In this document: positions 23,593 through 63,591 of the stretch, piece by piece
How positions within the stretch are numbered: the stretch's first letter is position 1
How the letters are laid out: each line of letters starts with the position of its first letter
Assembly (NCBI RefSeq): GCF_006345805.1
Contig: NC_043023.1
Span: 15,624,001-15,688,000, forward strand
Source of the DNA: Octopus sinensis
Lineage: Eukaryota
Direction of reading: 5' to 3'
DNA: 64,000 bases
Position numbers and translations under genes: made by a program
Notes under the pieces: model-generated
Seen by the model: only the letters and a program-made list of their open reading frames with translations
Database searches by the model: none
What the model was told of the DNA's origin: nothing

Positions 23593-24821
<1,229 letters not shown>

Positions 24822-30320: not shown

Positions 30321-31225
<905 letters not shown>

Positions 31226-33190: not shown

Positions 33191-33444
33191 CCTTTGATAT
33201 ATATATATGTTTGTATTATATACCATGCCTGGTTGTTGACAAATTTTTAAATGGCGGTGCCCCGGCGTGGCCACGGCTCATGGGGTGAGGGTGGATGGAG
33301 TGAAAGGAAAAAAATATATATATATGCGTGTGTATGCTTGAATGTGTATATATATATATATATACATAATTATTTATATATTTTTTTTTCATTTCATTCC
33401 ATCTAGTTTCAGCTCGTGAGCTGTGGCCGTGCTGGGGCACCGCT

Positions 33445-38992: not shown

Positions 38993-39439
38993 GGTAAAAG
39001 TTTATATCCACAGTTTATCATTATGAAAATGTAGTTATAATTTTTATTGTTAAACCTTTGCTTTTTAAAGTCTTATATCTTCTTCTGTTTCTGTGTCATT
39101 TCAGATACTCGTATAAAGGAGTTTTACGTGAGATACATCATGAATATTGATCATGTTTTGAAAACGAATGTCAGCCGTTATAAATAATAGATAATAACTC
39201 TGTTTATATAATATATCTATGGTGAATAACGGTGAAATATTTCTTCTGAATTAATAGCAACATTTGTTTTCCTCATTGCCAGGAATATTTACAAAAGTAT
39301 TTCACATTCAGTTTGAATGTGAGAAAATCTGGAAAGGTGTTTGTATCATTTTCAGATATTCAAGATCAGATTTGCTGTAGAAGATATATATAAAGAAGAA
39401 GGGAAAATATATTTTCTGTCTGTATACTATAGAACAATA

Positions 39440-41432: not shown

Positions 41433-41670
41433 TGTTGTGATGAGAGTTACCATGTCCCCTTGTGAGAGATAGACTGGTTCGAGTTAAGTATAAATAGTAA
41501 CGATCTGAGTGGGTTCGCGGTTCAGAGTCAAGTGAAGTCAGAAGGTGTCGCTTGGTTTACTTCCTAAGGAATATTGAATGTTGGTTCTTAAAAGATTTGT
41601 TAGTTCATTAGATTGTTGTTACAATTTTCTGGTTATCTTATTTATTGTACGGAACAATTATGTCACAACA
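41433..41670 (+). mobile_element. LTR (238 bp) of a Gypsy-type element
   Basis: TGTTGTGA...TCACAACA inverted termini, followed by PBS-like TGGCGATGAGG at 41673. Confidence 0.75.
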
Positions 41671-42490
41671 TCTGGCGATGAGGGTTTCGAAGCTCTTGCA
41701 GGTCAGTTAACAAATTTTTGTGATACAAAATTGTTAAATCATGGAAGACTAATTAGCTTCTATAAAACTGTTGCAAAATCAACGACAAAGGCAACAACAA
41801 CAACAATTATTGGAGCTTTATTCAAAGAAGTCCAAAAATAAGGGAAGTACATTTTTGCCAGACGACATTTTGGACTCTATGAATTCAGTTATAACCCAGA
41901 GGACGGTATAACTGTTGCATTGTACTACAGCAGGTAATTTTTAAGGATGATTGTAAGACATGGTCAGACACAGAAAAAGTAAGGTTATTATGATATAAAT
42001 GAGCCCCATCTGAGTATGAACATTACTTTAATTTCATATTACCCAAAAAAACTCAATGAAATTTGTTTTAAAGAAACAATGGAATTACTGTCTAACATAT
42101 TCGGTGATAAAACTTCTCTAACACTTGGATGGTGTTTTGGAATATAATGAAAAAAGAGGATGGTGATTTTATCACATACACAGGAACAATTGACAGGATG
42201 TGTGAATATTTTAAACTCAAGAAGTTACACCTGAGATGTTCAGGTGTCTTATTTTGGTAAAAGGCCTTACAACAACTGAAAATACAGAAATTCACACTGC
42301 AGAACTAAATTCTGAAGATCAACCATTAAAGATCCTAGAGGGCTCTCAAAAGAAACAAAATTCGACTCCCAAATAAGAAAATTTGTACACGTAAAAATGA
42401 TTGGAATAAATATTAAACTTCAGTTCGATACTGGAAGTGATATTTCAATAATAAATATGGATACATGGAAGAAAATAGGGGAACCTGTCT
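41671..42490 (+). pseudogene. Degenerate Gypsy gag and aspartic protease
   Basis: EFSYNPEDGIT...DTEKVRLL...FNFILPKK...IFGDKTSL; MFRCLILVKGL; KLQFDTGSDISIIN. Many stops. Confidence 0.7.
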
Positions 42491-42494
42491 ATCT

Positions 42495-42843
42495 TACATG
42501 TTTCAGGCATTTGACAGTGGCCATGCTGGAGCACCGCCTTTAGTTGAGCAAATAGACCCAGGACTTATTCTATTGGTCTCTTTTGTCGAACCGCTAATGA
42601 CGGGGATATAAGCACCTCAGCATCGGTTGTCAAGCAATGCTAGGGGGACAAACACAGACACACAAACATACATATATACGATGGGCTTCTTTCAGTTTCC
42701 GTCTACCAAATCCACTCACAAGGCTTTGGTCGGCCCGAGGCTATAGTAGAAGACACTTGTCCAAAGTGCTACACAGTGAGACTGAACCTGGGACCATGTG
42801 GTTGGTAAGCAAGCTACATACCACACAGCCACTCCTGCGCCTA
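42495..42843 (-). mobile_element. SINE family A
   Basis: Mirror of 52632-52980. Confidence 0.8.
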
Positions 42844-43196
42844 TATGTACACATTACACAAGATATTGTTTGCTTTTTTCTCTGTTGTCTGTATTAAAGA
42901 AATATTTTCAAATTATTTCACTTTAATAGAATTTATTATTTCTTTAGCTTGTATTAAATAATTTTGACCTCATAACTCATTAAAATAATTGCATTATCTT
43001 TTTAACTTATCTCTCTGCTTTTATATATTATGTTGGGTGTGTAGGCATGTATAAATATATATATATAGAGAGAGATTTTAAAAGTGTCCCGAATATATGG
43101 TTTTCTAATTTGGCAACCCTATCCAAATGTGTCCCTTATGAGCCTATACAATTGATGATACAGCATAGAATTCACACTCGATCAATGTATGATAAA

Positions 43197-46100
43197 AGTT
43201 AGTTAGTTAGTTAGTTAGTTAGTTAATTTGGCTCAAAAGCAAATAGCAAGGCCATGTAGGGGGATATGGAGTTAAGTACAGGGTGGTGTTCATGTAAAGA
43301 GTTCAGGCCACTTGAGGTCCAGGGAGGCTTTGAACAAAGCGGTCGTCGGCATCTTCACCATCTCGTCTGGCAGCTTGTTCCACGGATCCGCAACCCGGAC
43401 GGAGAAAGCTCCTCTCCTTCGATTGAGATGAAATCGTCGCAGGTAGAGCTTTTCGGAATGACCCCGCAGCCGACGCTCCGGAGCAGGAGTGAAGAACAGC
43501 TCTTTCGAGAGGTTACACTTCCCGCTTATGATGTTGTGGGCGAGAATGAGATCACCACAGCGGCGGCGTTTTTCAAGAGAATAAAGGTCGAGCATCCTCA
43601 GCCTTTCTTCGTAGGACAAATTTTTGAGACCATGAACCAGGCGGGTAGCCAGCCTCTGGACTCTTTCGAGGTGCTGTATGTCTTTGAGGAGATAAGGAGA
43701 AGAGGCTTGAATCCCATACTCCAATATGGGTCTCACCAGCGTGACATAGAGTGGCAGGAATATGGCTGCTGTGAGCATTCCGAATGACCGTCGAATCAAA
43801 AACAGAATTCCGCGCGCTTTGTTGGCAGCATGGACGCACTGGGCCGAAGGCGAAAAGGAGGAATCCACCAAGATACCCAGGTCCTTTACCTGATCGGTCC
43901 TCTCCAGCAGCAGACGACCCGGCTCGAAATCAAGTTGAGTTGCAGGAGTGCAGATGACAGCACTTTGACACGTTCAGACACAGGTCCCAATCGTTAGACC
44001 ACTTCCAAATTTGGTGGAGGCATCGACGAAGATCCTCTATACTACCGCGAGGAGCGACCAGTTTGATATCGTCGGCAAATAGAAGGGTGTGTTGCGTGAG
44101 GTCGTCGGGCAAGTCATTTATGAAGACTAAGAACAACAAGGGCCCAAGCACTGAACCTTGAGGCACGCCACTGCTCGCACTGGAGACGTCGGACCGTGAA
44201 CCATTAACTTGAACTTGGAAGGAGCGATCTGAGAGGAAGGCACCAACCCATCGTACAATATCCGGATGGAAACTATATGCCTGAAGCTTGACAAGTAGTA
44301 GGCGGTGGTTTACCGAGTCAACAGCTTTGGCAAAGTCCAATAAAACGATGTCAACAGCATCACTATCATCGAGGATGCGCGTCACCAATTCTTCCATTAC
44401 TAGTAAGTTGGTCAAGCATGATCTCTTCGGCACGAAGCCATGTTGGGAATCAGTGATCGAGGCTGTGCTTAGGAGGTGGAGCATCATACTTTTCTTAAGG
44501 ATGGTTTCGAACATCTTGCTGATTATTGATGTAAGGGAAACCGGTCGGTAGTTAAGCGGGTCTTCGCGGCTCCTTTCTTGAAAATTGGGCAGATTATCGC
44601 TGTTCTCCAGTCTGCAGGTATAACACCCGTCGCCAATGACATATTGAATAGTCGTGTTAAGGGCTCGCAGATGACCGGAGCCAACGCTTTGATAACCCAT
44701 GGGTGTATGCCGTCAGGGCCGTGACCCTTGTTGACATCGAGGCCTTGAATAACACGTTTGACTTGGTCCCGCGTGATGATCAATCGAAGCATTGGAGGTA
44801 CCGATCTATCAAATGGAGGGGATTCACGACCATCATCTTGTTTGAAAATAGTTGAAAAAGCCTCGGCAAATAATTGACTCTGTTGATAAGGGTCCTCAAT
44901 CGATACGCCTGTTGAGTCTACCAATGTTGCAATCTGGTTGTTCAAGCGGGAATTCCGCTGGACATGGGCAAAGAAGGTTTTTGGATTGCTACTGGCATTT
45001 GCCGCGATTTTGTATTCATAACTGAAGCGTTCTTTTTTTTCAATTTTCACGGCTCGGTCTCGTTGAGTTTTGTACACCTCAAAAGCTGCAGTCGAATCCA
45101 GATTTTTGAATTCAGCCCAAGCAATATCTCTGAGTCGACGTTCTCGTTTAACCTTCTTCGTCACCCAGGGCTTGTGTTTCTTCCTCTTGGGAAGTCCAAC
45201 GGGAACTGCCTGGTCAGTGAAACAGATTACATATGCTTTGAGGGATGACCATAGTTCGTCTACTGAGGACAACGTCATCAGGGAACGCCAGTCCAGAAGC
45301 ACGGAAGCCTCGGTTAGAATTTCAAGATTAATTGCAGAGAAGACTCTACGTGGCAGCGAAGTAATCGTGGGCGTGGAAAAAGTTGTGTGCATGACGAACT
45401 TCAGGACCGCATGATCACTCTTGGCAAGAGGGGCGCACAGATACGTCTGACACTGATCTTGGATAGCGGGAGAATACCAGATCTAGCATAGATGGCTGCT
45501 GCCCAGACCGATGCCTTGTCGGATATTCAACATGTTGCGATAGAAAACAATCTTCAGCCACGTCAAGAAGGGCCTGGCCGAACCGGGAAGATGTTGTACA
45601 AATTGATGCGGGCCAATCGATCGTGGGAGCGTTGAAGTCGCCTAGTACCAAGCAGTCATGCGAAGCTGAAACGAATCTTATCGCCTCGAGTAGATGAGCA
45701 TCGTCCTGGGGGTCGGCTAGAGGCGGCCTGTAGACAGCCAACACGGGCAGGCAAAACTCAGATAGGCTCAGCTTGCAATAGACGGCATCGAATTTGGTTG
45801 TAGGTTGAGCATTTGTGGGTAGAATACCGCAGGACGGTTTGTGCTCAGACTTAACATACACAGCAACACCTCCACCTCGCCTTTTTCCTCTGTCACATCT
45901 GAAAAGGACGTAGCCCTGCAGGTGGATCTCTGAGTCCTTTACTGCTGGAGTCAGCCAAGTCTCGGTGATAGCTATCACATCAGGGGAGTCGCGTAGGGCC
46001 AGTGTAAATAGTTCACTGAACTTTGGGAATAAGGAGCACGAGTTGGTGTAGACGATGCTGAGCTGTGAAGTCTGAGGGGCGGGAGTTGGGGAACAAGCAG

Positions 46101-47831
46101 AATAAAGGGCATCAGAGATAGCATCGTTGACGGGGGTATCAACTTCACTTCGATTTGCCTTCACATCACTTTCCCTGTCAGCACTACAGCATGGGACCAG
46201 AGGTAGGACTTGATTATCTGTCCATCTTGGATTCGTAAACCCTTCTCTCCCATTGTTTCCTCATCTTTAGTCGGATATCAGGTTCCTCCGGCGAATTCTC
46301 TCTCTTAGTGAGTATTCCTCGCGAAAACCCATATTGGGGTCCTCCCAGGCATGCGTCTGAGCTCTGTTCAGAAAGACTGAAGCCTCCCGATCACAAGAAA
46401 AGATTACCCTTATTGGGCGTGGTCTAGTATCTGCGGTTGGGTTCGCTTGGAATCTTCCTAGCCGAGCGACCTTAAGAAACACTGACATTTTCGTTCACAG
46501 AGAACAATTTTCCAACCAAAATAGAAACAAAATTAATGTCATCTTTTAGGCGGTTTTGCCTGTATCACAGGTGGATTCAGCTTTGCCATATATTATTGCC
46601 GATCTTGAGTGGGCCAAAAAGTTCTCTACTATGAGCCGCGGTATTCGATTCTTCATTGGAGGATTTCGAAAGGGTGGTTTCATAGCCATCAGACTTATGT
46701 CGGCCTGTGGGGTCGATCGGAATGGATTTAGTGGTCATAATTTCCCGCCTGGTTTGAAACTGCACTGCCTCTTCTTTGGTTTGGGGGAGCACCACTCCCC
46801 AGATGACCCACATCGAGATCGTTCAGAATTGGTTGAGCAATGGCATTAATGGGAAGGACAAGTGAAGGAGAATCCAAACAGATTTTATCGTGATCAGGTT
46901 TCATAGCCAAATCTGCCCCTCTGGAGTTTTGACTACGTTTCTTCTTTTTGGGGAGAACAACGGTCTTCAGGTGGGTTTGGGTCTACGCTCCTCGAACTAG
47001 GTTGGGGAACCTCCGGGACCGAAAAGGCAGATGAGGAAGAATCTGCACAGGAACGATCATGTGCAGGAACGACCGCCGGTTCCTTCGCCTTCTTTGGCCG
47101 CTTCGATTTTGTTCCCTTCGGTTTGGACGTCTCCAGGGAAGAAATCAAGGGTGACTCTGCGTCAAACAGGAGACCGTTATCGTGGTCAGGTTTCATAGCT
47201 AAATCCGCCCCACTGGAGTTTTGACGACGTTTCTTCTTTTGGGGGAGAACAACGGTCTTCAGGTGGGTTTGAGTCTACGCTCCTCAAATTAGGTTGGGAA
47301 ACCTCCGGGACCGAAAAGGCAGATGGGGAAGAATCCGCACGGGAACGATCATGTGCAGAAACGACCCACGGTTCCTTCGCCTTCTTTGGCCGCCTCGATT
47401 TGTTCCCTTCGGTTGGATGTCTCCAGGGAAGAGATCAAGGGTGACTCTGCGTCAACAGGAGACTGTTTATTCAGTAAGAGAGCAACAACAGACTTTAGGT
47501 GCTCAACCTCTTGTTTGAGCAACAGCAATGTTCGTTGAGCTGGATATTGGTAGGACCAATCTTGATGAGAAGCCCTACTTGCAGATCTCAGTTTCGATGC
47601 GTAGGTAGCTGACATGATGGATGGTTGACTAAAAACAATCTTCTATGGGCTCTAGGACAAATCGGGGTTAAATCAGGAACAAAAAACAGGTGCAATCCTT
47701 GTAGGAGTAGGCAACAGCAGACAAAAACTGAGAGAGTTTGGGCTGAGCCGAATCACAATCCAAGATTGAAAGCAGACGGTGCTTGAGAGTCGGGAACCCT
47801 TCCTAATTGTCTGAAGCAGCTTTAGGATTAA
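43197..47831 (-). mobile_element. CR1-type LINE (ORF1 plus APE-RT ORF2), frameshifted, 5' end runs into the gap
   Basis: IAITETWL, LGDFNAP, PGPDG-like HGPDGIH, QHGFVPKRSC, LDFAKA, GVPQGSVLGP, FADD, LSYEERLR motifs; (TAAC)n tail; ORF1 ATG at 47615. Confidence 0.9.
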
Positions 47832-47931
47832 NNNNNNNNNNNNNNNNNNNNNNNNNNNNNNNNNNNNNNNNNNNNNNNNNNNNNNNNNNNNNNNNNNNNN
47901 NNNNNNNNNNNNNNNNNNNNNNNNNNNNNNN
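47832..47931. other. Assembly gap, 100 N
   Basis: Run of exactly 100 N, a typical placeholder for a gap of unknown size. Confidence 0.98.
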
Positions 47932-50900
47932 ACCAATAGTCAGCTCAACGAACAGTTGCTGTTGCTCAAACAAGAGGTTGAGCACCTAAAGTCTGTTGTT
48001 GCTCTCTTACTGAATAAACAGTCTCCTGTTGACGCAGAGTCACCCTTGATCTCTTCCCTGGAGACGTCCAAACCGAAGGGAACAAAATCGAGGCGGCCAA
48101 AGAAGGCGAAGGAACCGGCGGTCGTTTCTGCACATGATCGTTCCCGTGCGGATTCTTCCTCATCTGCCTTTTCGGTCCCGGAGGTTCCCCAACCTAATTT
48201 GAGGAGCGTAGACTCAAACCCACCTGAAGACTGTTGTTCTCCCCAAAAGAAGAAACGTCGTCAAAACTCCAGTGGGGCGGATTTAGCTATGAAACCTGAC
48301 CACGATAAACGGTCTCCTGTTGACGCAGAGTCACCCTTGATTTCTTCCCTGGAGACGTCCAAGCCAAAGGGAACAAAATCGAAGCGGCCAAAGAAGGCGA
48401 AGGAACCGGCGGTCGTTCTTGCACATGATCATTCCTGTGCGGATTCTTCCTCATCTGCCTTTTCGGTCCCGGAGGTTCCCCAACCTAGTTCGAGGAGCGT
48501 AGACCCAAACCCACCTGAAGACCGTTGTTCTCCCCAAAAGAAGAAACGTAGTCAAAACTCCAGAGGGGCAGATTTGGCTATGAAACCTGATCACGATAAA
48601 ATCTGTTTGGATTCTCCTTCACTTGTCCTTCCCATTAATGCCATTGCTCAACCAATTCTGAACGATCTCGATGTGGGTTCATCTGGGGAGTGGTGCTCCC
48701 CCAAACCGAAGAAGAGGCAGTGCAGTTCCAAACCAGGCGGGAAAATTATGACCACTAAATCCATTCCGATTGACCCCACAGGCCGACATAAGTCCGATGG
48801 CTATGAAACCACCCTTTCGAAATCCTCCAATGAAGAATCGAATACCGCGGCTCATAGTAGAGAACTTTTTGCCCACTCAAGATCGGCAATAATATATGGC
48901 AAAGCTGAATCCACCTGTGATACAGGCATAAACCGCCTAAAAGATGACATTAATTTTGTTTCTATTTTGGTTGGAAAATTGTTCTCTGTGAACGAAAATG
49001 TCAGTGTATTTAAGGTCGCTCGGCTAGGAAGATTCCAAGCGAATCCAACCGCAGATACTAGACCACGCCCAATAAGGGTAATCTTTTCTTGTGATCGGGA
49101 GGCTTCAGTCTTTCTGAACAGAGCTCAGACGCATGCCTGGGAGGACCCCAATATGGGTTTTCGCGAGGAATACTCACTAAGAGAGAGAATTCGCCGGAGG
49201 AACCTGATATCCGAGCTAAAGATGAGGAAACAAATGGGAGAGAAGGGTTTACGAATCCAAGATGGACAGATAATCAAGTCCTACCTCTGGTCCCATGCTG
49301 TAGTGCTGACAGGGAAAGTGATGTGAGGGCAAATCGAAGTGAAGTTGATACCCCCGTCAACGATGCTATCTCTGATGCCCTTTATTCTGCTTGTTCCCCA
49401 ACTCCCGCCCCTCAGACTTCACAGCTCAGCATCGTCTACACCAACTCGTGCTCCTTATTCCCAAAGTTCAGTGAACTATTTACACTGGCCCTACGCGACT
49501 CCCCTGATGTGATAGCTATCACCGAGACTTGGCTGACTCCAGCAGTAAAGGACTCAAGAGATCCACCTGCAGGGCTACGTCCTTTTCAGATGTGACAGAG
49601 GAAAAAGGCGAGGTGGAGGTGTTGCTGTGTATGTTAAGTCTGAGCACAAACCGTCCTGCGGTATTCTACCCACAAATGCTCAACCTACAACCAAATTCGA
49701 TGCCGTCTATTGCAAGCTGAGCCTATCTGAGTTTTGCCTGCCCGTGTTGGCTGTCTACAGGCCGCCTCTAGCCGACCCCCAGGACGATGCTCATCTACTC
49801 GAGGCGATAAGATTCGTTTCAGCTTCGCATGACTGCTTGGTACTAGGCGACTTCAATGCTCCCACGATCGATTGGCCCGCATCAATTTGTACAACATCTT
49901 CCCGGTTCGGCCAGGCCCTTCTTGACGTGGCTGAAGATTGTTTTCTATCGCAACATGTTGAATATCCGACAAGGCATCGGTCTGGGCAGCAGCCATCTAT
50001 GCTAGATCTGGTATTCTCCCGCTATCCAAGATCAGTGTCAGATGTATCTGTGTGCGCCCCTCTTGCCAAGAGTGATCATGCGGTCCTGAAGTTCGTCATG
50101 CACACAACTTTTTCCACGCCCACGATTACTTCGCTGCCACGTAGAGTCTTCTCTGCAATTAATCTTGAAATTCTAACCGAGGCTTCCGCGCTTCTGGACT
50201 GGCGTTCCCTGATGATGTTGTCCTCAGTAGACGAACTATGGTCATCCCTCAAAGCATATGTAATCTGTTTGACTGACCAGGCAGTTCCCGTTGGACTTCC
50301 CAAGAGGAAGAAACACAAGCCCTGGGTGACGAAGAAGGTTAAACGAGAACGTCGACTCAGAGATATTGCTTGGGCTGAATTCAAAAATCTGGATTCGACT
50401 GCAGCTTTTGAGGTGTACAAAACTCAACGAGACCGAGCCGTGAAAATTGAAAAAAAAGAACGCTTCAGTTATGAATACAAAATCGCGGCAAATGCCAGTA
50501 GCAATCCAAAAACCTTCTTTGCCCATGTCCAGCGGAATTCCCGCTTGAACAACCAGATTGCAACATTGGTAGACTCAACAGGCGTATCGATTGAGGACCC
50601 TTATCAACAGAGTCAATTATTTGCCGAGGCTTTTTCAACTATTTTCAAACAAGATGATGGTCGTGAACCCCCTCCATTTGATAGATCGGTACCTCCAATG
50701 CTTCGATTGATCATCATGCGGGACCAAGTCAAACGTGTTATTCAAGGCCTCAATGTCAACAAGGGTCACGGCCCTGATGGCATACACCCACGGGTTATCA
50801 AAGCGTTGGCTCCGGTCATCTGCGAGCCCTTAACACGACTATTCAATATGTCATTGGTGACGGGTGTTATACCTGCAGACTGAAGAACAGCGATAATCTG

Positions 50901-52280
50901 CCCAATTTTCAAGAAAAGGAGCCGCGAAGACCCGCTTAACTACCGACCGGTTTCCCTTACATCAATAATCAGCAAGATGTTCGAAACCATCCTTAAGAAA
51001 AGTATGATGCTCCACCTCCTAAGCACAGCCTCAATCACTGATTCCCAACACGGCTTCGTGCCGAAGAGATCATGCTTGACCAACTTACTAGTAATGGAAG
51101 AATTGGTGACGCGCATCCTCGATGATAGTGATGCTGTTGACATCGTTTTATTGGACTTTGCCAAAGCTTTTGACTCGGTAAACCACTGCCTACTACTTGT
51201 CAAGCTTCAGGCATATAGTTTCCATCCGGATATTGTACGATGGGTTGGTGCCTTCCTCTCAGATCGCTCCTTCCAAGTTCAAGTTAATGGTTCGCGGTCC
51301 GATGTCTCCAGTGCAAGCAGTGGCGTGCCTCAAGGTTCAGTGCTTGGGCCCTTGTTGTTCTTAGTCTTCATAAATGACTTGCCCGACGACCTCATGCAAC
51401 ACACCCTTCTATTTGCCGACGATATCAAACTGGTCGCTCCTCGCGGTAGTATAGAGGATCTTCGTCGATGCCTCCACCAAATTTGGAAGTGGTCTAACGA
51501 TTGGGACCTGTGTCTGAACGTGTCAAAGTGCTGTCATCTGCACTCCTGCAACTGAACTTGATTTCGAGCCGGGTCGTCTGCTGCTGGAGAGGACCGATCA
51601 GGTAAAGGACCTGGGTATCTTGTTGGATTCGTCCTTTTCGCCTTCGGCCCAGTGCGTCCATGCTGCCAACAAAGCGCGCAGAATTCTGTTTTTGATTCGA
51701 CGGTCATTCGGAATGCTCACAGCAGCCATATTCCTGCCACTCTATGTCACGCTGGTGAGACCCATATTGGAGTATGGGATTCAAGCCTCTTCTCCTTATC
51801 TCCTCAAAGACATACAGCACCTCGAAAGAGTCCAGAGGCTGGCTACCCGCCTGGTTCATGGTCTCAAAAATTTGTCCTACGAAGAAAGGCTGAGGACGCT
51901 CGACCTTTATTCTCTTGAAAAACGCCGCCGCCGTGGTGATCTCATTCTCGCCCACAACATCATAAGCGGGAAGTGTAACCTCTCGAAAGAGCTGTTCTTC
52001 ACTCCTGCTCCGGGGTCATTCCGAAAAGCTCTACCTGCGACGATTTCATCTCAATCGAAGGAGAGGAGCTTTCTCCGTCCGGGTTGCGGATCCGTGGAAC
52101 AAGCAGCCAGACGAGATGGTGAAGATGCCGACGACCGCTTTGTTCAAAGCCTCCCTGGACCTCAAGTGGCCTGAACTCTTTACATGAACACCACCCTGTA
52201 CTTAACTCCATATCCCCCTACATGGCCTTGCTATTTGCTTTTGAGCCAAATTAACTAACTAACTAACTAACTAACTAACT
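47932..52280 (+). mobile_element. CR1-type LINE, mirror copy
   Basis: ORF1 47956..49326 and ORF2 pieces 49323..52174; tail (TAAC)n at 52252-52280; same insertion flank as the left copy. Confidence 0.9.
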
Positions 52281-52631
52281 TTTATCATACATTGATCGAG
52301 TGTGAATTCTATGCTGTATCATCAATTGTATAGGCTCATAAGGGACACGTTTGGATAGGGTTGCCAAATTAGAAAACCATATATTCGGGACACTTTTAAA
52401 ATCTCTCTCTATATATATATTTATACATGCCTACACACCCAACATAATATATAAAAACAGAGAGATAAGTTAAAAAGATAATGCAATTATTTTAATGAGT
52501 TATGAGGTCAAAATTATTTAATACAAGCTAAAGAAATAATAAATTCTATTAAAGTGAAATAATTTGAAAATATTTCTTTAATACAGACAACAGAGAAAAA
52601 AGCAAACAATATCTTGTGTAATGTGTACATA

Positions 52632-52980
52632 TAGGCGTAGGAGTGGCTGTGTGGTAAGTAGCTTGCTTACCAACCACATGGTCCCAGGTTCAGTCTCACT
52701 GTGTAGCACTTTGGACAAGTGTCTTCTACTATAGCCTCGGGCCGACCAAAGCCTTGTGAGTGGATTTGGTAGACGGAAACTGAAAGAAGCCCATCGTATA
52801 TATGTATGTTTGTGTGTCTGTGTTTGTCCCCCTAGCATTGCTTGACAACCGATGCTGAGGTGCTTATATCCCCGTCATTAGCGGTTCGACAAAAGAGACC
52901 AATAGAATAAGTCCTGGGTCTATTTGCTCAACTAAAGGCGGTGCTCCAGCATGGCCACTGTCAAATGCCTGAAACATGTA
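52632..52980 (+). mobile_element. SINE family A
   Basis: Head ggcgtaggagtggctgtgtggtaag and B-box-like ggttcagtctc. Confidence 0.8.
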
Positions 52981-52984
52981 AAAT

Positions 52985-54026
52985 AGACAGGTTCCCCTAT
53001 TTTCTTCCATGTATCCATATTTATTATTGAAATATCACTTCCAGTATCGAACTGAAGTTTAATATTTATTCCAATCATTTTTATGTGTACAAATTTTCTT
53101 ATTTGGGAGTCGAATTTTGTTTCTTTTGAGAGCCCTCTAGGATCTTTAATGGTTGATCTTCAGAATTTAGTTCTGCAGTGTGAATTTCTGTATTTTCAGT
53201 TGTTGTAAGGCCTTTTACCAAAATAAGACACCTGAACATCTCAGGTGTAACTTCTTGAGTTTAAAATATTCATACATCCTGTCAATTGTTCCTGTGTATG
53301 TGATAAAATCACCATCCTCTTTTTTCATTATATTCCAAAACACCATCCAAGTGTTAGAGAAGTTTTATCACCGAATATGTTAGACAGTAATTCCATTGTT
53401 TCTTTAAAACAAATTTCATTGAGTTTTTTTGGGTAATATGAAATTAAAGTAATGTTCATACTCAGATGGGGCTCATTTATGTCATAATAACCTTACTTTT
53501 TCTGTGTCTGACCATGTCTTACAATCATCCTTAAAAATTACCTGCTGTAGTACAATGCAACAGTTATACCGTCCTCTGGGTTATAACTGAATTCATAGAG
53601 TCCAAAATGTACTTCCCTTATTTTTGGACTTCTTTGAATAAAGCTCCAATAATTGTTGTTGTTGTTGCCTTTGTCGTTGATTTTGCAACAGTTTTATAGA
53701 AGCTAATTAGTCTTCCATGATTTAACAATTTTGTATCACAAAAATTTGTTAACTGACCTGCAAGAGCTTCGAAACCCTCATCGCCAGATGTTGTAACATA
53801 ATTGTTCCGTACAATAAATAAGATAACCAGAAAATTGTAACAACAATCTAATGAACTAACAAATCTTTTAAGAACCAACATTCAATATTCCTTAGGAAGT
53901 AAACCAAGCGACACCTTCCGACTTCACTTGACTCTGAACCGCGAACCCACTCAGATCGTTACTATTTATACTTAACTCGAACCAGTCTATCTCTCACAAG
54001 GGGACATGGTAACTCTCATCACAACA
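52985..54026 (-). mobile_element. Gypsy LTR (53789-54026) plus gag-protease remnant, mirror copy
   Basis: Reverse complement of 41433-42490. Confidence 0.72.
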
Positions 54027-54682
54027 GGTGCCATTCTAACCAGATGCCCATCATAAATCCCTGCTTGGTGTCTGGTAAGAACAAAACCATGAAAACCTGC
54101 TCTACAGAATGATTTAGCAAAAAATAAGTATGATGATAATCCCTTGCATGGGTTGAGCGGGGATGTGCTTGAACCATAGGTAGAGTGGGGCATTAGGCTC
54201 TTGAAAAATATTTCCCTCTCTACACCCAAAACTGTAACAAACAGCAATAAGCCTCCAGCTAGTGCCAGAATATGTGGGCAGTAGCACAAAGGGTGCAGAT
54301 CCTGGGATCCCTGAGTGTGCCCAGCAGAGGATAACTGATCATGGCTGGGAACTGGAGTGTAATACATTTGTGTCAAAATAATATATCCACAAGAAAATAG
54401 AGCAAATTAATATAATCAATATTGTTTGAATAAAAAACACACATCGTAATTAGTGAGTTGATGCAAATGAGGAAAATGTGAAAAATGAATTTATTTTGTA
54501 AAAAGTAATACATTTGCAGTATTTTATTCAGCAGGACATCTGTTTTATCATTGATATTGTTATTGATCAATATGAATAAGTATATGTTTAGTTAAGGTAG
54601 ATTATTGAGAGAATGATTTAGCACAGATTACACAGTCATAAGAATCTTCTCCTGTATGAATATGTTTGTGTTTAGTTTATTA

Positions 54683-54793
<111 letters not shown>

Positions 54794-54967
54794 TCAGGTA
54801 TCACAGCAATCGAGTTTCTCTCCTGTATGAATACGTTTATAAGTATATACAGCATATTCACAATAGAATGATTTGCTGCAGACATCACAGTCACATAGTT
54901 TCTCTCCAGTATGAGCAGACTTGTAATTAATTAAATAATTTCTTAAACGGAATAATTTACTGCAGTG

Positions 54968-56356
54968 CTATGGTTTGTCCCCTGTATTAATGCATTTGTG
55001 TCCATTTAAGTACCTTTTTTGAGAGAATGATTTACCACAGATATAGCACCGATATGGTTTCTCACCTGTATGAACTGATTTGTGATATGTAAGGTGACCT
55101 TTTTGAGAGAATGATTTACCACAAATATCACATTTATATGGTTTCTCTCCTGTATGAGTGTATTTGTGATAAGTAAGGCCTCTCCTTCGAATGAACGATT
55201 TACCACAAATATCACAGGGATATGGCCTCTCATGAGCATGAATGAGTTCGTGAGTAGTTAAATGACTTTTTGATGAAAAGGATTCATCACAGATATCACA
55301 CTGATATGGTTTCTCACCTGTATGAACTGATTTGTGAGTAGTAAGGTTACATTTTTGAGAGAATGATTTACCACAAATATCGCAGTGATGTGGCTTCTCA
55401 CGTGTATGTCCACGTTTGTGAGTAGTTAAATGACTTTTTAATGAAAAAGATTTATCACAGATATCACACTGATATTGTTTCTCACCTGTATGAACTGATT
55501 TGTGATAAGTAAGGTGACCTTTTTGAGAGAATGATTTACCACAAATATCACATTTATATGGTTTCTCTCCTGTATGAGTGTATTTGTGATAAGTAAGGCC
55601 GTTCCTTCGAGTGAATGATTTACCACAAATATCACAGGGATATGGCCTCTCATGAGCATGAGGGAGTTTGTGAGTAGTTAAATGACTTTTTGATGAAAAA
55701 GATTTATCACAGATATCACAGTGATATCGTTTCTCTCCTGTATGAATGTATTTGTGTCTAGTAAGGTGACTTTTTGATGAAAATGATTTACCACAAATAT
55801 CACACTGATATGGTTTCTCTCCAGTATGAACGGAATTGTGAGAAGTAAGGCGACTTCTTTGAGAGAATGATTTACCACAAATATCACACCGATATGGTTT
55901 CTCACCTGTATGAATGTATTTGTGAGAATAAAGGCTACTTTTTTGAGAGAATGATTTACCACAAACATCACACTGATGTGGTTTCTCTCCTGTATGAATG
56001 TGTTTGTGAGAATCAAGGCTACTCGCATGACAGAATGATTTACCGCAAATATCACAGTGATATGGTTTCTCTCCTGTATGAATGGCTTTGTGTTTAGTAA
56101 GGTTATATTTTTTAGAGAATGATTTACCACAGATATCACAGTGATATGGTTTCTCTCCAGTATGAGTGTATTTGTGATGAGTAAGGTGACTTTTTTGAGA
56201 GAATGATTTACCACAGATATCACAATGATATTGTTTCCCCCCTGCATGAATGAATTTGTGAACAGTGAGATGTCCCTTATTAGAAAAAGTCTTTTTACAG
56301 ATATCACATTGGTCTGATAACTTTTCTCTTTCTTTTAACATCTCCAGACTACTCAT
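54968..56356 (-). CDS. C2H2 zinc-finger protein ZNF-6, 16 finger repeats, intact ORF
   Basis: 462 aa = 14 + 16 x 28; the last repeat has the second His replaced by Asn. Confidence 0.93.
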
Positions 56357-56804
56357 TATTGTTCTGTAGTATACAGACAGAAAATATATTTTCCCTTTCT
56401 TCTTTATATATATCTTCTACAGCAAATCTGATCTTGAATATCTGAAAATGATACAAACACCTTTCCAGATTTTCTCACATTCAAACTGAATGTGAAATAC
56501 TTTTGTAAATATTCCTGGCAATGAGGAAAACAAATGTTGCTATTAATTCAGAAGAAATATTTCACCGTTATTCACCAGAGATATATTATATAAACAGAGT
56601 TATTATCTATTATTTATAACGGCTGACATTCGTTTTTAAAACATGATCAATATTCATGATGTATCTCACGTAAAACTCCTTTATACGAGTATCTGAAATG
56701 ACACAGAAACAGTAGAAGATATAAGACTTTAAAAAGCAAAGGTTTAACAATAAAAATTATAACTACATTTTCATAATGATAAACTGTGGATATAAACTGT
56801 TGCC

Positions 56805-57900
56805 CGAAGAAATTACACTTTAAAATGATACTCATGACACAAGACATTACTTTCGTCTATAATGACCTGAGTCATAAATCTAATACTTTCTCTAGTTTAG
56901 TTTCAATGCACCCAAACAAACAAAAGGAAAAGCTGTGTAAATAACGGACAGAGTCAAAACTATTGAAAAGGTTGCAAGACGCAAAGAAAATTTTAGGAAA
57001 AAAGTAAATAAGTAAGAAATAACTGCAAAATTTTACCGATGAGTGTGTTAAGTTATAAGGCATCAACCACAGTGAAAATTTTGTTGATCCGACAAATGCG
57101 TCGGTGCACATACAGACGATAGAGAGATTGTGGGGGTCAGTTAAGAGATCAGTTGTTCGCCCAGGCATTCGTGCCTGTTACTTAAAGCAATACCTCTCCA
57201 AGTTCCTATTTATGGAAAGCATCAAACCTGCTGCCAAGAGAATACACGTATTCTTATTGGCAGCAGCAAGTCTTTATCCTGGCCCGAGATAATTTTTTCC
57301 TCCAACCCATCTCATTTCTTTATCATCACTGTCGATGGACCACTCAAAGAGGTATGTATACATTATCATTTTCGTAACATAATTTCTGTAGTATTTCAAG
57401 ATGTTTCTGACACGTATTTTGATTCATATGGCGGAGATCCAACATTTCTTCACTTTTTCCAGAATTTCTTTTCTTTTTTTTTTTTTTTTTTGCGAAATAT
57501 GTACTAAAATACGGAGTTTATGATTCATGTGTGAGTGTGTGTTCTTGATACTCGTTCAGAACACGTAGTTTTACACCAATTACACTATTTTTTCTTAGTT
57601 TAAAGACCGTGGACTGAAGGTGTAAATTTTCCGAGGCTTCTCCCCCACCCCCCTTTCGCGAGTGCGCATTTTGTTAGTCATATTCGTTTAGAGCAAGTTG
57701 TTTTACACATATTACACTATTTTTTTTTTTTTGTTTTGGTGCCCGGGTCAGCCCCTCAGACGCTTTCGGAAATTCCCGATGTGAATTCTCCGAGGCCTCT
57801 CCCCCACTCCCCTTTCGCGTGCGCGCATTTTTTTTTATCATATTCGTTCAGAGGAAGTTGTTTTTTGTTTCTTTGAATGGTGTAACGCTTTAGTTTAACC
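56805..57900 (+). mobile_element. Merlin/IS1595-type remnant, mirror copy
   Basis: GINHSENFVDPTNASVHIQTIERLWGSVKR; ends ctttagtttaacc at 57900, followed by gttaattc. Confidence 0.75.
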
Positions 57901-58581
57901 GTTAATTCTATTCGCCAATAAATGTCTTTAATTAAGCCAAGAAATTTGGATTTTACTTGGCATGGCCATGAAAAAGCACCAAATTTTTAGCTTTTTTTTT
58001 TATTACAGTAGATATTCCATTTGCTGACTGTGTCGATTCAAAGCCGTCTATTGATTTATCATAGAGGTATTATTTGCTAAACATCTATATTTGCTGTTCC
58101 TGTCGAAATAATCCACGTTAATTACGTCTGATTTTTGCTCCTGTGAATAATCTGCAATCTAATAAAACAGAAATAGCTGACTGCAACATGAGGCCAGTGG
58201 TACCGCGATGATAAAACAAGATACACCTTTTCGTAGACAGAATCAGCAAATGGCTTAAACTTGAAAAGAAACGAATACACAAACGTATTTATGATCCAGA
58301 CCTTCAACACATGTGAATGCAGAATTTCTTTAAAAGATTTACATTATTAATAAGGTTACAGAAGGAAAAGTCGTGGTGGGTTAGTGTTTAAATTATACTT
58401 GTTTGATGTATTCTAAAAGTCAGGACAGTCGGGAACACAAGCGAACTTCATTAAGAGGTCTGCTCAGTCAGGGGTGACCATGGGCTAAACAACAGTGACT
58501 TGCCACGTTTCTGAAGATAGTAGAATATTATTGTCCACCGTTTTGTAGTTTAACATTTCCCATAATATCTGAAGGTGGAGG

Positions 58582-58698
58582 GGTTAAACTAAAGCGTTAC
58601 ACCATTCAAAGAAACAAAAAAAAAAATGTGTGTAATAGGTGTAACACAAGCCAATGTGGTTAGCCATGGATGGCTTCTAAACTTCCTTTAGTTTAACC
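58582..58698. mobile_element. 117-bp two-ended deletion derivative of the Merlin-like element
   Basis: GGTTAAACTAAAG at 58582 and CTTTAGTTTAACC ending at 58698 (13-bp TIR), then GAATTAAC. Confidence 0.7.
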
Positions 58699-59090
58699 GA
58701 ATTAACATCGATGTCAAACTAGCAACTTTTAAAACTTTTTACTTTTCTTTGGAGTTTCGAATTAGCCAGGTTAATCGGCTTCTGCTAAAAAATAAGATAT
58801 ATATTACATCTTACCTGTTTTGATAAATAGATCATATGTTACGATAATTAGATTAATGTGAATTAATGTTAATTACACAAAAGAGCAATTAACGGGAATA
58901 TAGTTTAAAGACACTTTAAAAGTCGGCATGGAAAGTCAACGAAACGAACTAAAATATCCTGATGTTGTATACCTCGTATTACTACACATTTGTCGGATGA
59001 TAAAACTGAGTTGGTAAATTTTTAATGTTTTATTATTGCTATAATTACTATTTAAAATTTTGAATTGTAAGAAAAAATCCAAATGATGAT
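58699..59090 (-). promoter_or_regulatory. ZNF-cassette promoter, exon 1 and donor (minus strand)
   Basis: Inr-like ttagttcgtttcgttgac at 58952-58935; donor cag|gtaag at 58815|58814. The intron start continues the sequence broken at 37754. Confidence 0.65.
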
Positions 59091-59455
59091 AAAAGATACG
59101 AAACTAAAGCTTATCTTCCAGTCGATTGCTACTTTTACGCTGTTCTGTCGTCGAACCCGTAAGTTACAGGGACGGAAAGAAACGAATACAGCTTATCAGA
59201 GTGATGTTGGATGAGGATAGGGGGAAAGATGCAGGCATCAGTGTTCGAAAACCATTGTTGGTTTGTTTATATTCCAGTAACGTATTTGTGCAATGGGCGG
59301 GGGTAAAGAATACGCACACCACCCGTTTACGGTGTAAGCCTAACCCATGCGTCGCAGGAGGCGGAAGAGGTCAAGCAGGACGCACGTGTGGTCATCGACG
59401 AAGGGACAGTTCGAGCAGAGATGAGAAATCGCACGTTGACGTCGTTTGTGTTTTT

Positions 59456-62324
59456 GGTACTTGTCTATTGTCGTGGTCCCGGTTTCGCACACGCGAATTC
59501 GCGCGCCAGACGTAGGTACTCGATACTCAAGATCCTACGAGGTGACTTGCGCATGCGCAGTGCAGAATTCGCGCATGCGCGTTAACGCCCCCCCCAAAAA
59601 AGGTGTTGGATTTCACTAAAAATATATATGTGTGTGTGTGTGTGTATATATAACATTTTCAATTTTACACAAAAAAATTACATAGTCGCTTTCCTCGCGG
59701 ATTTACAGATAAATGAATTAATTACTATTTTACAGAATAAAATTAATGAATTAATTATATAAATTAAATAATTCTTGAAAATTAATTAATATCAATAATA
59801 TTTTTTGAACAAAGTAAATAATTTATAAAACTTGGTTAATAATTTTTTTTACACAAACGCGAACGTATATAATTTGTGAAACTTTTTTTTTTTTTACAGA
59901 CGTATATAATTTGGTAAACTTAATGAATTAATTTCTTATCATCATCATCATCGTTTAACGTCCGTTCTCCATGCCAGCATGGGTTGGACGGTTCGACCGG
60001 GGATCTGGGAAGCCAGAAGGCTGCACCAGACTCCAGTCTTATCTGGCAATGTTTCTACAGCTGGATGCCCTTCCTAACGCCAACCACTCCGAGAGTGTAG
60101 TGGGTGCTTTTTACATGCCACCCGCACAGGTGCCAGGCGAGGCTGGCAACGGCCACGGTCGGATTGGTGCCAGTCGAGGCGGCTCTGGCATCGGCCACGA
60201 TTCGGATAGTGCTTTTTACGTACCACCAGTCCAGGGGTCCTGGCATTTGCCGGGTGTCACACTTGCCCCAATATGTCTTCGCAAGCAAAGGGGGTTGGCA
60301 TGGGTGCCTGTCGTGGGATGAGGTTCGATATCAACTTCGCTTGCCTCAACAGGTCTTTGTGTATAAATGTATAAATTTTTCGCACTAAATTCTTTCCGTA
60401 GAATTTATCAAAAAACGCGCAAAATTATTCCGTAGAATTTATCAAATTAAAAAACGCAAAATTAATATATTTTTTGAAATTGCAAATTATTTAGAATATA
60501 AAACAAATGAAGTTAAATTTTAAAAATAAATGTCATATACTTATACTCTGTAAGGTGCTGTGTTCACACTTCAATTTACTATTTTCTAGAAATGTTGCTT
60601 TTCTAATTGAAACAATTTTTCTCAATCTCCATTTAAAAGTCCATCATGTCTCTTGAGACATATCAAAATGAACAACTTTGAATTACGCGGCGGCGGTGGT
60701 GGTGTGAGGTTCTAATTTTTTTTTCTGATCTCTCTTTGCCCCCTCTTTATCTCAGTTGTTCATTCCGCTAATATTTAGAAAAATTTTCGCGCCCAATTTT
60801 TGTTGTCGCGGGAAAAGATGAACGATTTAAAATAAATATATCTTAATTGTAGTGTGAGAAAGTATATATATTCTGATGACAAAATATATTATCTTTCAAA
60901 AACATCCCAAATTTATAGACTATATCGTGTAGGTTTAAGAAATATATATATATATATAGATATATATATATATACATATATAGTAGAGAATGAAACATCT
61001 TTCATCTGTCTCCCCACCACACCTCCATCTAGGGGGGCAAAGAGAGATCAGAAAAAAAAATTAGAACCTCACACCACCACCGCCGCCGCGTAATTCAAAG
61101 TTGTTCATTTTGATATGTCTCAAGAGACATGATGGACTTTTAAATGGAGATTGAGAAAAATTGTTTCAATTAGAAAAGCAACATTTCTAGAAAATAGTAA
61201 ATTGAAGTGTGAACACAGCACCTTACAGAGTATAAGTATATGACATTTATTTTTAAAATTTAACTTCATTTGTTTTATATTCTAAATAATTTGCAATTTC
61301 AAAAAATATATTAATTTTGCGTTTTTTAATTTGATAAATTCTACGGAATAATTTTGCGCGTTTTTTGATAAATTCTACGGAAAGAATTTAGTGCGAAAAA
61401 TTTATACATTTATACACAAAGACCTGTTGAGGCAAGCGAAGTTGATATCGAACCTCATCCCACGACAGGCACCCATGCCAACCCCCTTTGCTTGCGAAGA
61501 CATGTTGGGGCAAGTGTGACACCCGGAAAATGCCAGGACCCCTGGACTGGTGGTACGTAAAAAGCACTATCCGAATCGTGGCCGATGCCAGAGCCGCCTC
61601 GACTGGCACCAATCCGACCGTGGCCGTTGCCAGCCTCGCCTGGCACCTGTGCGGGTGGCATGTAAAAAGCACCCACTACACTCTCGGAGTGGTTGGCGTT
61701 AGGAAGGGCATCCAGCTGTAGAAACATTGCCAGATAAGACTGGAGTCTGGTGCAGCCTTCTGGCTTCCCAGATCCCCGGTCGAACCGTCCAACCCATGCT
61801 GGCATGGAGAACGGACGTTAAACGATGATGATGATGATAAGAAATTAATTCATTAAGTTTACCAAATTATATACGTCTGTAAAAAAAAAAAAAGTTTCAC
61901 AAATTATATACGTTCGCGTTTGTGTAAAAAAAATTATTAACCAAGTTTTATAAATTATTTACTTTGTTCAAAAAATATTATTAATATTAATTAATTTTCA
62001 AGAATTATTTAATTTATATAATTAATTCATTAATTTTATTCTGTAAAATAGTAATTAATTCATTTATCTGTAAATCCGCGAGGAAAGCGACTATGTAATT
62101 TTTTTGTGTAAAATTGAAAATGTTATATATACACACACACACACACACATATATATTTTTAGTGAAATCCAACACCTTTTTTGGGGGGGGTGCATTAACG
62201 CGCATGCGCGAATTCTGCACTGCGCATGCGCAAGTCACCTCGTAGGATCTCGAGTATCGAGTACCTACGTCTGGCGCGCGAATTCGCGTGTGCGAAACCG
62301 GGACCACGACAATAGACAAGTACC
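59456..62324. mobile_element. Foldback-like element, 2869 bp, with about 1.29-kb inverted arms and an 8-bp TSD
   Basis: GTGTTTTT|GGTAC...GTACC|GTGTTTTT; arms 59456-60743 and 61033-62324; spacer about 290 bp. Confidence 0.85.
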
Positions 62325-62496
62325 GTGTTTTTTTTACGCTCGTGAAATTTGGTAAAAAAGAACAAAAAGTGAGTGGGAAAATTGTTGTTGTTGTGGAATT
62401 TTGTACGTTTGTTGATGCGGTTTCGCGTTACACTGGTTCTATGCGTTGCACTGTTTCTGTTCGGGCGGCCGTTTTCGGTTTGTCAGACGGAGGGAG

Positions 62497-63591
62497 ATGG
62501 ACGACCACTCCCTAGTGGAGGAGTCGGAGGAAGAATGGATATTTGAGAACTTGTCGGAGACATCGACCTCTGAAGACGAGCAAATCGGTGATGTAAATAA
62601 TGTGGAGATAAAAAACAGGAAAACGTACGCAGGAGTTGCAAAAAAGAAGACGGTAGAGGAAAAGGAAATAAACCTAGAAAAATTGCCAGGTTTCCAGAGG
62701 TATATGAGGAAGGACAGCGGTGAGGTGGAACTAACACCACCACCAAAGAGAAAAGAATGGTTGGAGAAAAGGACCATCATATACAGGGTATTCGCAAGCG
62801 GAACGAAAAAGATAGAAGTGGTGAATATGGAGTGGATAAATGAGGCGCTAAGAAGAACGGAAGAGGAAATCGAATTTCTGTCGAGAGGTTCAAAATATGG
62901 TACTGTAGTAGTACAGTTCAAAAGTGAGAAGGCAGCAAGGAAGATGGCGGCGAAGGCGGTGAAATCCGAGAAGGTAATACTTTTGCCTACGTATTTAAAT
63001 AGAAAAATCACAAGAGTAAGGGTCGAGGGAATAGCCCCAAACGTTGAAGCCGAGTGGATTGTGGCGGCTATAATTAGCGGCCACGAGGATGAAGTGGACA
63101 TCCTCCATGCCTCGGTTAAGACCGAGGGCTGGAGAGGCGTGACAGTGGAACTAAATGTGCAGGCAGAGAACGATGTACTGGTGGACCTAACAAAAAACAT
63201 CAGATTGGGAGACGTGATCATGAGAGTGTGGGTGGAGGGCAGGGCGCCCAGGTGCTATAAGTGTGGCCTGAGGGGTCACATAAGAGCCTACTGCCCTCCC
63301 CCACAAAAAGAAACAGTGATCCAGGAAGAGGAGGAAACGGAGCCGGAAAAAGTTGAAGCGGAAGAACCTGAGGAGGAGAAGGAAATCCAAACTGAGTGGG
63401 AAGACGTACGGAAAAAAAGAAAAAGAAAGAAAGTGAACTTTATTGAATCCCAATCCACCCCAACACCACCCGCACCCTCTGAGCCCCATCCTTCCCCTGC
63501 AAACAAAGAGCCCACCCATTCCCCACCTACAAGAAAACCTAAAAACACAGACACACAGATGATACAAGAGCCCATACTTTATGTTTTATAA
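62497..63591 (+). CDS. Gag-like ORF1 with a single CCHC zinc knuckle (non-LTR, Tx1/L1-like)
   Basis: CYKCGLRGHIRAYC (CX2CX4HX4C), acidic N-terminus and basic KKRKRKK segment; first ATG at 62497. No RT follows within the window. Confidence 0.65.
   Translation: MDDHSLVEESEEEWIFENLSETSTSEDEQIGDVNNVEIKNRKTYAGVAKKKTVEEKEINLEKLPGFQRYMRKDSGEVELTPPPKRKEWLEKRTIIYRVFASGTKKIEVVNMEWINEALRRTEEEIEFLSRGSKYGTVVVQFKSEKAARKMAAKAVKSEKVILLPTYLNRKITRVRVEGIAPNVEAEWIVAAIISGHEDEVDILHASVKTEGWRGVTVELNVQAENDVLVDLTKNIRLGDVIMRVWVEGRAPRCYKCGLRGHIRAYCPPPQKETVIQEEEETEPEKVEAEEPEEEKEIQTEWEDVRKKRKRKKVNFIESQSTPTPPAPSEPHPSPANKEPTHSPPTRKPKNTDTQMIQEPILYVL

Follow-up and report, generated by a model that had tools for sequence, protein, structure and literature searches.

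This analysis concerns a 64-kb window of AT-rich eukaryotic DNA from Octopus sinensis (contig NC_043023.1; all positions follow window numbering) and, within it, the zinc-finger gene ZNF-6 and the predicted promoter and first exon standing beside it. The window holds six C2H2 zinc-finger (ZNF) arrays amid long and short interspersed nuclear element (LINE and SINE), Helitron and DNA-transposon sequence and is part of an octopod C2H2 ZNF cluster made of a repeated cassette. Self-comparison and alignments define the cassette unit as an upstream block of ~330-440 bp with a strong donor at its end, an intron of ~2.4 kb, an invariant acceptor, a conserved leader of ~340 nt and a finger open reading frame (ORF), the last two in one large exon. 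Read functionally, each cassette would consist of a CpG-rich promoter with a non-coding exon 1, the ~2.4-kb intron, and a large exon carrying the 5' untranslated region (5'UTR) and the finger array. First-exon donors lie at 1970/1971 (ZNF-1), 9206/9207 (ZNF-2), 20795/20796 (ZNF-3), 881/880 (a gene off the left edge) and 58815/58814 on the minus strand, the same donor being present in all five first-exon blocks of the window, and second exons start at 4405, 11695, 23237, 36892 (minus), 39105 (plus) and 56692 (minus). The acceptor, CTGTGTCATTTCAG directly before the exon, sits in the alignment within 23 consecutive columns that are invariant in all six cassettes, and the introns of ZNF-1, ZNF-2 and ZNF-3 measure 2,434, 2,488 and 2,441 bp, respectively. 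All five exon-1 blocks reach a CpG observed/expected ratio of 1.5-2.1, compared with 0.72 in the window as a whole, and rank among the top 3% of 325-bp windows; this enrichment gives independent support to the five upstream blocks as predicted promoters. Exon-1 conservation as a sign of selection was rejected, as identity there (0.53-0.86) is not above the cassette background of ~0.8.

The features leading from the first-exon block into ZNF-6 are, in minus-strand order:

58815-59139, minus strand: promoter-proximal region and predicted non-coding exon 1, homologous to the other first-exon blocks; exon end at 58815
58813-58814, minus strand: splice donor GT (ACAG/GTAAGAT, the slash marking exon end 58815), kept in 5/5 first-exon blocks
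58707-58812, minus strand: first ~108 bp of a native cassette intron, attached to exon 1, with 68-82% pairwise identity up to ATCGATGTTAATTC
58699-58706, plus strand: exon-1-side copy of the target-site duplication (TSD) GAATTAAC, adjoining the short terminal inverted repeat (TIR) end at 58698
58582-58698, plus strand: Merlin-type element of 117 bp, internally deleted (a miniature inverted-repeat transposable element, MITE), with a long TIR at 58582-58624 and a short TIR at 58686-58698
57901-58581, plus strand: segment B', an inverted copy of a ZNF-4 intron segment, ~98% identical to 37066-37754 to the last base
56806-57900, minus strand: Merlin remnant with a TIR at 57858-57900, ~160-bp tandem units, an A/T tract and a transposase remnant at 57023-57292 (plus)
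56693-56805, minus strand: cassette intron tail kept by ZNF-6, the last 113 bp, with acceptor AG at 56694-56693
56357-56692, minus strand: 336-nt 5' untranslated leader within the ZNF-6 finger exon, with 85% mean column identity across six cassettes
54968-56356, minus strand: ZNF-6 coding sequence, 462 aa, with 15 intact C2H2 fingers and a degenerate last finger

The ZNF-6 array is made of tandem C2H2 fingers with TGEKP linkers, 15 of its 16 units fitting the pattern C..C.{12}H.{3,4}H. Its intron ends at 56693 and its exon starts at 56692, and the leader at 56357-56692 may contain a further small intron. The conserved first-exon module as a whole occupies 58699-59139 on the minus strand; an earlier sequence-only reading of this DNA had located the block correctly but drawn it too narrowly, at 58815-59090. 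The 58815-59139 part is homologous to 767-1158 (minus), 1705-2084 (plus), 8971-9320 (plus) and the interrupted 14113-14341 plus 20783-20855 (plus), contains the core GTTCGTTTCGTTGAC at 58949-58935, and ranks in the top 2% of 325-bp windows with a CpG observed/expected ratio of 1.67 (whole window: 0.72). Transcription of this exon would probably start near the conserved core at 58935-58967.

Donor 58814 (CAG/GTAAGA) lies on the same strand as the ZNF-6 acceptor at 56693 and would define an intron of 2,122 bp, to be compared with 2,434-2,488 bp in three cassettes, which agrees with the normal-sized 2.1-kb intron proposed in that reading. ZNF-6 stands in sense orientation at normal intron distance from the 58815 exon. 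The ZNF-4 acceptor at 36893 is 21,922 bp from the same donor, matching the ~22 kb given earlier. Cassette homology of ZNF-5 and ZNF-6 starts only at 38992 and 56805, respectively, 113 bp before the acceptor, with Merlin remnant upstream; the claims that both genes keep ~110 bp of their own intron and that ZNF-6 lacks an exon 1 of its own are borne out by this. In terms of local structure, the arrangement of exon 1 and ZNF-6 is very likely to be as described here.

A 1.29-kb inverted repeat (59456-60743 and 61033-62324; 99.3% identity, 290-bp spacer) starts ~320 bp upstream of the 58699-59139 block; its CpG-rich ends hold GCGCATGCGC, each arm contains a SINE-like piece, and it could affect the promoter of the block. 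Within the cassette intron segment there is an imperfect 53-nt inverted repeat (58017-58069 and 58201-58253; also at 9364-9627), which may be an older embedded MITE and because of which the ZNF-2 intron matches the segment in both orientations.

An 8-bp direct repeat, GAATTAAC, at 37747-37754 and 58699-58706 flanks everything from 37755 to 58698, and the 13-bp TIR GGTTAAACTAAAG is perfectly inverted at 37755-37767 and 58686-58698, so that this 20.9-kb stretch is bounded by proper Merlin termini and by an exact 8-bp target duplication. The longer GGTTAAACTAAAGCGTTACACC occurs three times, at 37755 (plus), 57900 (minus) and 58582 (plus), against no occurrence in 100 shuffles, and there are accordingly three long terminal repeat ends (43-47 nt, at these positions) and one short end (58686-58698). 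When the two outer flanks were joined by script into an empty site, the product was collinear with four uninterrupted cassettes (Z0, Z1, Z2 and Z3); the junction reads ATCGAT(G/A)TTAATTC/TATT, the last slash marking the join, and the 8-mer is present once in uninterrupted cassettes. Given the perfect TSD and the seamless empty-site join, the exon-1 block was once continuous with the intron segment 37066-37746. The earlier proposal that the split TSD makes the block the 5' end of ZNF-4 is supported by GAATTAAC at both flanks and the empty-site collinearity with four cassettes.

The transposase remnant at 57023-57292 (~90 aa, also present in the left-arm copy) matches the NCBIfam profile NF033547 (IS1595 transposase) with E=1.6e-6, at 28 bits against a curated cut-off of 75 and over profile positions 152-213 of 215, that is, the C-terminal end only. 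Its match to Pfam PF12762 (E=0.008, 16.6 bits, below the curated cut-off of 27) is likewise confined to the C-terminal end, and a homologue search with the remnant returned no candidate. Merlin elements, in Feschotte's description of 2004, reportedly make 8-9-bp target duplications and encode an IS1016/IS1595-like transposase. The 8-bp duplication, terminal inverted repeats and putative IS1595-like C-terminus found here fit the Merlin superfamily, from which the locus differs in retaining only a degraded ~90-aa transposase fragment and non-autonomous derivatives.

The other side of the split duplication lies at ZNF-4 and ZNF-5:

36040-36892, minus strand: proximal part of ZNF-4 exon 2, with the initiator ATG changed to AAG and five fingers followed by a SINE/LINE insertion
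37066-37754, minus strand: segment B, native ZNF-4 intron, with TSD GAATTAAC at 37747-37754, continuing unbroken into 37065...36893 and exon 2
37755-38991, plus strand: left-arm copy of the Merlin remnant, with a TIR at 37755
38992-40482, plus strand: ZNF-5, comprising 113 bp of intron, the acceptor (exon start 39105) and an ORF with a 1-bp frameshift at 39614

ZNF-5 and ZNF-6 belong to the left and right arms, respectively, of a 10.5-kb inverted repeat (37066-47551 and 47932-58581). The ZNF-1 interval 4020-4420 aligns collinearly over 37065/37066, for example in CATAATATC.GAAGGT.GAGG/AGCTG.AGTCTGTGTATA, the slash marking the boundary, which makes the boundary of the left arm native and the arm with ZNF-6 presumably a derived copy. 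Segment B' carries the inverted TSD GTTAATTC at 57901-57908, and its outer end at 58581/58582 is the sole rearrangement junction, located at the outer base of a long terminal repeat; this junction did not arise from a repeat-mediated chimera, because in it a repeat end meets the distal end of B'. Identity is ~98% between B and B' but reaches only about 79-85% between ZNF-4 and ZNF-6 in the neighbouring intron and exon; B' is accordingly a recent duplicate of ZNF-4 intron sequence rather than an intron native to ZNF-6. The block at 58699-59139 is therefore likely to be the promoter and exon-1 half of the ZNF-4 cassette, and the claim that a ZNF-4 promoter module now stands in front of ZNF-6 is supported by the alignments.

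The history that would account for these features begins with a Merlin-type transposon inserting into the ZNF-4 cassette intron at GTTAATTC and making the 8-bp duplication. One transposon end now stands beside exon 1 at 58698/58699; the other, at 37754/37755, adjoins what is left of the ZNF-4 intron and the ZNF-4 gene. Between them lie the two inverted copies of the 10.5-kb segment, each with a finger exon and a Merlin remnant fused to the last 113 intron bp of another cassette, the left copy continuing natively into ZNF-4 and the right copy ending on a Merlin terminal repeat (58581/58582). The right arm would have been derived through an inversion or inverted duplication starting from a transposase-made break, and this rearrangement would have brought ZNF-6 to within 2,122 bp of the ZNF-4 donor, in the sense orientation. 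Transcription would then start in the CpG-rich block and 58815 would be spliced to 56692, the resulting mRNA combining the first exon and expression control of ZNF-4 with the ZNF-6 finger array. As a whole, this explanation is advanced tentatively, its chances being put somewhat short of even.

The mechanism of REARRANGEMENT appears, by analogy, to be alternative-transposition-like. As alternative transposition predicts, the breakpoint coincides exactly with a transposon terminus, the arm ending at 58581 and the TIR beginning at 58582. As for a target duplication at new junctions, one junction is visible, with CCTCCACC beside the TIR, and the site 37066-37073 is native and shows no duplication; the scaffold gap or another chromatid may hold the partner junction. 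In maize, alternative transposition of Ac/Ds generates chimeric genes as well as inversions that activate expression (PMC1592236, PMC8225341), and re-replication yields composite duplications (PMC4270019). The two systems share a cut-and-paste transposon with several nearby ends, a breakpoint at a terminal repeat, an inversion or duplication that puts a coding region under the 5' region of another gene, and composite structures with duplicated flanks. Unlike in the maize cases, the element here would be Merlin-type (IS1595-like) rather than hAT, the second junction with a new 8-bp duplication is out of view, and the event is old (0.2-2% divergence) and deduced from sequence instead of observed.

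Partial or chimeric duplicates and retrogenes can also recruit a resident promoter or 5' exon. The ZNF-6 arrangement resembles these in having a promoter-less copy downstream of another gene's first exon, with a possible 5'UTR chimera and an unchanged protein. It differs in that donor and recipient belong to one cassette family and the captured exon 1 is paralogous to the lost one, as a result of which the regulatory novelty may be small. The kind of event is known from other systems, and the locus presents a new instance rather than a new mechanism.

Several observations weigh against the proposed history and against the use of exon 1 by ZNF-6, and they are set out here with the alternatives to which they lend weight. 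With regard to mechanism, no single event could be reconstructed that gives both the native B and the inverted B', and the suggestion in the sequence-only reading that an array was swapped under an existing expression programme "in one step" is not borne out. The long repeats facing each other across B' and the closeness of the junction between Merlin and intron sequence to the arm breakpoint (~60-100 bp, counted along the cassette) are likewise left unexplained. Both fit a different history, in which exon 1 belongs to the ZNF-6 cassette itself, Merlin was inserted there, a transposon-mediated inversion between two facing terminal repeats flipped 681 bp of intron, a deletion took the far end of the second copy, and ZNF-4 was not involved: facing long TIRs around an inverted segment are the classic product of such an inversion, and a junction ~60-100 bp past the breakpoint is expected for a deletion running out of the element. 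Yet an un-inverted copy of the segment is natively joined to ZNF-4 and ~98% identical over its whole length, adjacent intron and exon of ZNF-4 and ZNF-6 are just ~79-85% identical, and recombination would have needed a crossover within the last ~22 bp, all of which makes a ZNF-6-native exon very improbable. This reading, in which ZNF-6 always owned exon 1 and nothing but a local flip took place, was rejected in view of the native ZNF-4 junction and the 98% match between B and B'.

The centre of the duplication raises an assembly question, its feature being:

47832-47931, no strand: scaffold gap of 100 N at the centre of the inverted repeat, the arms ending at 47551 (+280) and 47932

Substitution divergence between the arms is ~2% in the outer 3 kb and 0.2-1% toward the centre, and indels of 8, 143, 336, 16 and 14 bp set the arms apart. 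Alignment of 46252-47528 with 47955-49234 contains thirteen 1-bp indels within 1.6 kb of the gap, with very few elsewhere, a cluster that suggests poorly polished contig ends in a long-read assembly. RTE-like LINE copies (43266-47831 and 47932-52174; 99-99.8% identical) stand head to head at the gap and hold 291-bp tandem repeats inside their first ORF (48014-48600), and each arm stops in this 5' part of the LINE.

Among the primary signs of a false duplication is an assembly gap separating the copies (PMC9516828), and its place at the centre of this one counts against a genuine duplication. The palindrome might accordingly be an assembly product, the two contigs coming from haplotypes distinguished by an inversion (breakpoints 37066 and 58582), with the assembler switching at the LINE beside the gap; ZNF-5 and ZNF-6 would then be alleles, and the exon-1/ZNF-6 layout would exist on one haplotype only. 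In its favour are the 100-N gap exactly between the copies, an arm divergence of 0.2-2% that is within the range of haplotype differences, the ending of both contigs in the same LINE 5' region with 291-bp tandem repeats, the thirteen 1-bp indels close to the gap, and the simplicity of the ancestral state that it implies, in which just one insert, with Merlin ends and a perfect TSD, is present on one of the haplotypes. The case resembles the heterotype false duplications of PMC9516828 in its two near-identical copies on one scaffold with a gap between, but the copies here are inverted and have different outer flanks. Since these flanks differ, a real structural difference is required anyway; the arms are moreover set apart by a four-finger indel of 336 bp, one repeat unit of 143 bp and several indels of 8-16 bp, and a true palindrome with 99% identical LINE arms would break assembly at its centre too. 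Overall, an origin from two haplotypes is considered less likely than not. It is one of three remaining readings, the others being a true palindrome whose centre the assembler left uncrossed and a misoriented right contig by which a direct repeat was made inverted. In all three, exon 1, the 2.1-kb intron and ZNF-6 lie together on the right contig. The statement that the arrangement is independent of the gap accordingly holds for the local layout (the gap lies outside 56693-59090) but not for the wider story, as the gap centres the duplication.

The remaining question is whether the layout works. Exon 1 lies at 2.1-2.5 kb in ZNF-1, ZNF-2 and ZNF-6, whose ORFs are intact, and such an exon is missing from ZNF-3 (with a Helitron inside exon 1), ZNF-4 and ZNF-5, whose ORFs are broken. 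Presence of exon 1 matches ORF integrity in 6/6 cassettes, a pattern that random assignment would give 1 time in 20 in what is a post hoc test. Nevertheless, the layout could be real but inert, ZNF-6 being a young copy of a promoter-less gene that is still without a disabling mutation, with exon 1 unspliced to it or promoter activity lost from the block. The new intron contains the antisense 681-bp segment B' between two facing 43-nt inverted repeats, which could form a hairpin, and acceptor-like sites at 58569 and 58413 score equal to the real acceptor in a crude pyrimidine count. The former, TTTAACCCCTCCACCTTCAG followed by AT on the minus strand, is a pyrimidine-rich site made by the junction, 245 nt past the donor; the claim that the donor first meets the ZNF-6 acceptor is right for the family acceptor only, given these equally pyrimidine-rich AGs. 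The promoter core has 5 changes in 33 bp against at most 2 in the other four copies, two of the five being CpG losses in the 58699-59139 block.

The open frame of ZNF-6 also fits inertness. With the arms only 0.2-2% diverged, a neutral 1.39-kb ORF would stay open in one lineage with a probability of ~0.17, an estimate based on ~1.5% substitutions and on 16 indels, 15 of which have lengths not divisible by three, over 7.7 kb of non-coding arm. Codon differences between ZNF-5 and ZNF-6 (24 non-synonymous, 13 synonymous) are near neutral, and the ancestor of the two genes already lacked exon 1 yet had an open frame, so that an open frame is no proof of expression. The decay pattern invoked earlier fits in that ZNF-6 is intact and ZNF-5 and ZNF-4 are broken, but the contrast between ZNF-5 and ZNF-6 is weak evidence for exon-1 use at 0.2-2% divergence and a ~17% chance. 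Finally, the exact products of ZNF-6 and ZNF-1 have no record in public assemblies or transcript assemblies, and no close protein to ZNF-6 was found in a collection of 5.8 billion proteins. Against an inert layout, donor and acceptor are intact at normal spacing, CpG enrichment is retained, exon-1 presence tracks ORF integrity in 6/6 cassettes, and the changes in the first 60 codons, when polarised against paralogues, fall mostly on ZNF-5 (six, including a zinc-ligand loss, versus two on ZNF-6). Taken together, inertness seems unlikely, if by no means negligible. That ZNF-6 actually uses the 58815 exon, with transcription from the block and 58815-to-56692 splicing, is possible without being quite probable, and capture of the ZNF-4 promoter as a working transcription unit is plausible at about the same strength.

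The broken genes differ in how they decayed. Compared with ZNF-6, ZNF-5 has the 1-bp deletion at 39614, outside any homopolymer, a His37Asp change at a zinc ligand, a 9-bp loss removing a Cys ligand, and a 336-bp difference that leaves it four fingers fewer. Ten of the ZNF-5/ZNF-6 substitutions fall within 40 bp of finger 1 (39530-39575), including the His-to-Asp ligand loss, and this cluster looks like a short gene-conversion tract from another paralogue instead of independent mutations. ZNF-4 has lost the initiator ATG of the family, and its array is broken after five fingers by ~4.8 kb of nested retroelements (31229-36039), among which are reverse-transcriptase ORFs (33785-35398), a run of 61-bp tandem repeats (35493-35875) and a SINE whose (GAT)n tail ends at 36039; the array resumes with its distal fingers at 30320-31228 (minus). 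In ZNF-3, the ORF is frameshifted near 23955, and exon 1 contains a canonical 6.4-kb Helitron (14342-20782) 13 bp before the donor, with TC...CTAG termini, located between A and T without target duplication and carrying Rep/helicase ORFs at 16651-20159 (plus).

Database comparisons place ZNF-6 among octopus ZNFs. The closest named proteins to its N-terminus are ZNFs of O. sinensis, O. vulgaris and O. bimaculoides at 55-72% identity; the N-terminal 93-aa query returned only these Octopus proteins, with no orthologue and no transcript-derived product among them, and generic vertebrate ZNFs dominate the full-length homologue search. An O. sinensis locus from hit P0125 was rejected as a counterpart, sharing only finger-array similarity (73-76%) and lacking the cassette exon 1. 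No RNA family was detected by Rfam across the whole window, and the octopus ZNF literature searched for gene structure contained no account of exon or promoter architecture. Elsewhere in the window, the exon-1 blocks at 767-1158 (minus) and 1705-2084 (plus) stand head to head with donors at 880 and 1971, which suggests a divergent promoter pair common to ZNF-1 and the gene beyond the left edge. At 62446-63591 (plus), a 381-aa ORF with a CCHC zinc knuckle (CYKCGLRGHIRAYCP) is probably a retroelement Gag.

With respect to the gene family, ZNF-5 and ZNF-6 lie beside a gap and may be counted as two genes though they are possibly one locus on two haplotypes, and such double counting would affect gene-family counts in cephalopod genomes. 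It could further be speculated, at very long odds, that Merlin-type elements act as composite or alternatively transposing units that re-pair finger exons with resident cassette promoters in octopus ZNF clusters; if true, Merlin-driven shuffling of promoters and fingers would be recurrent and could help explain the very large octopus ZNF expansion. Should ZNF-6 be transcribed from the 58815 exon, the locus would offer a clear example from nature of a DNA-binding array placed under the promoter of a family member, and such a transposon-associated route, which leaves the protein untouched, would be one way in which large ZNF clusters gain regulatory diversity.

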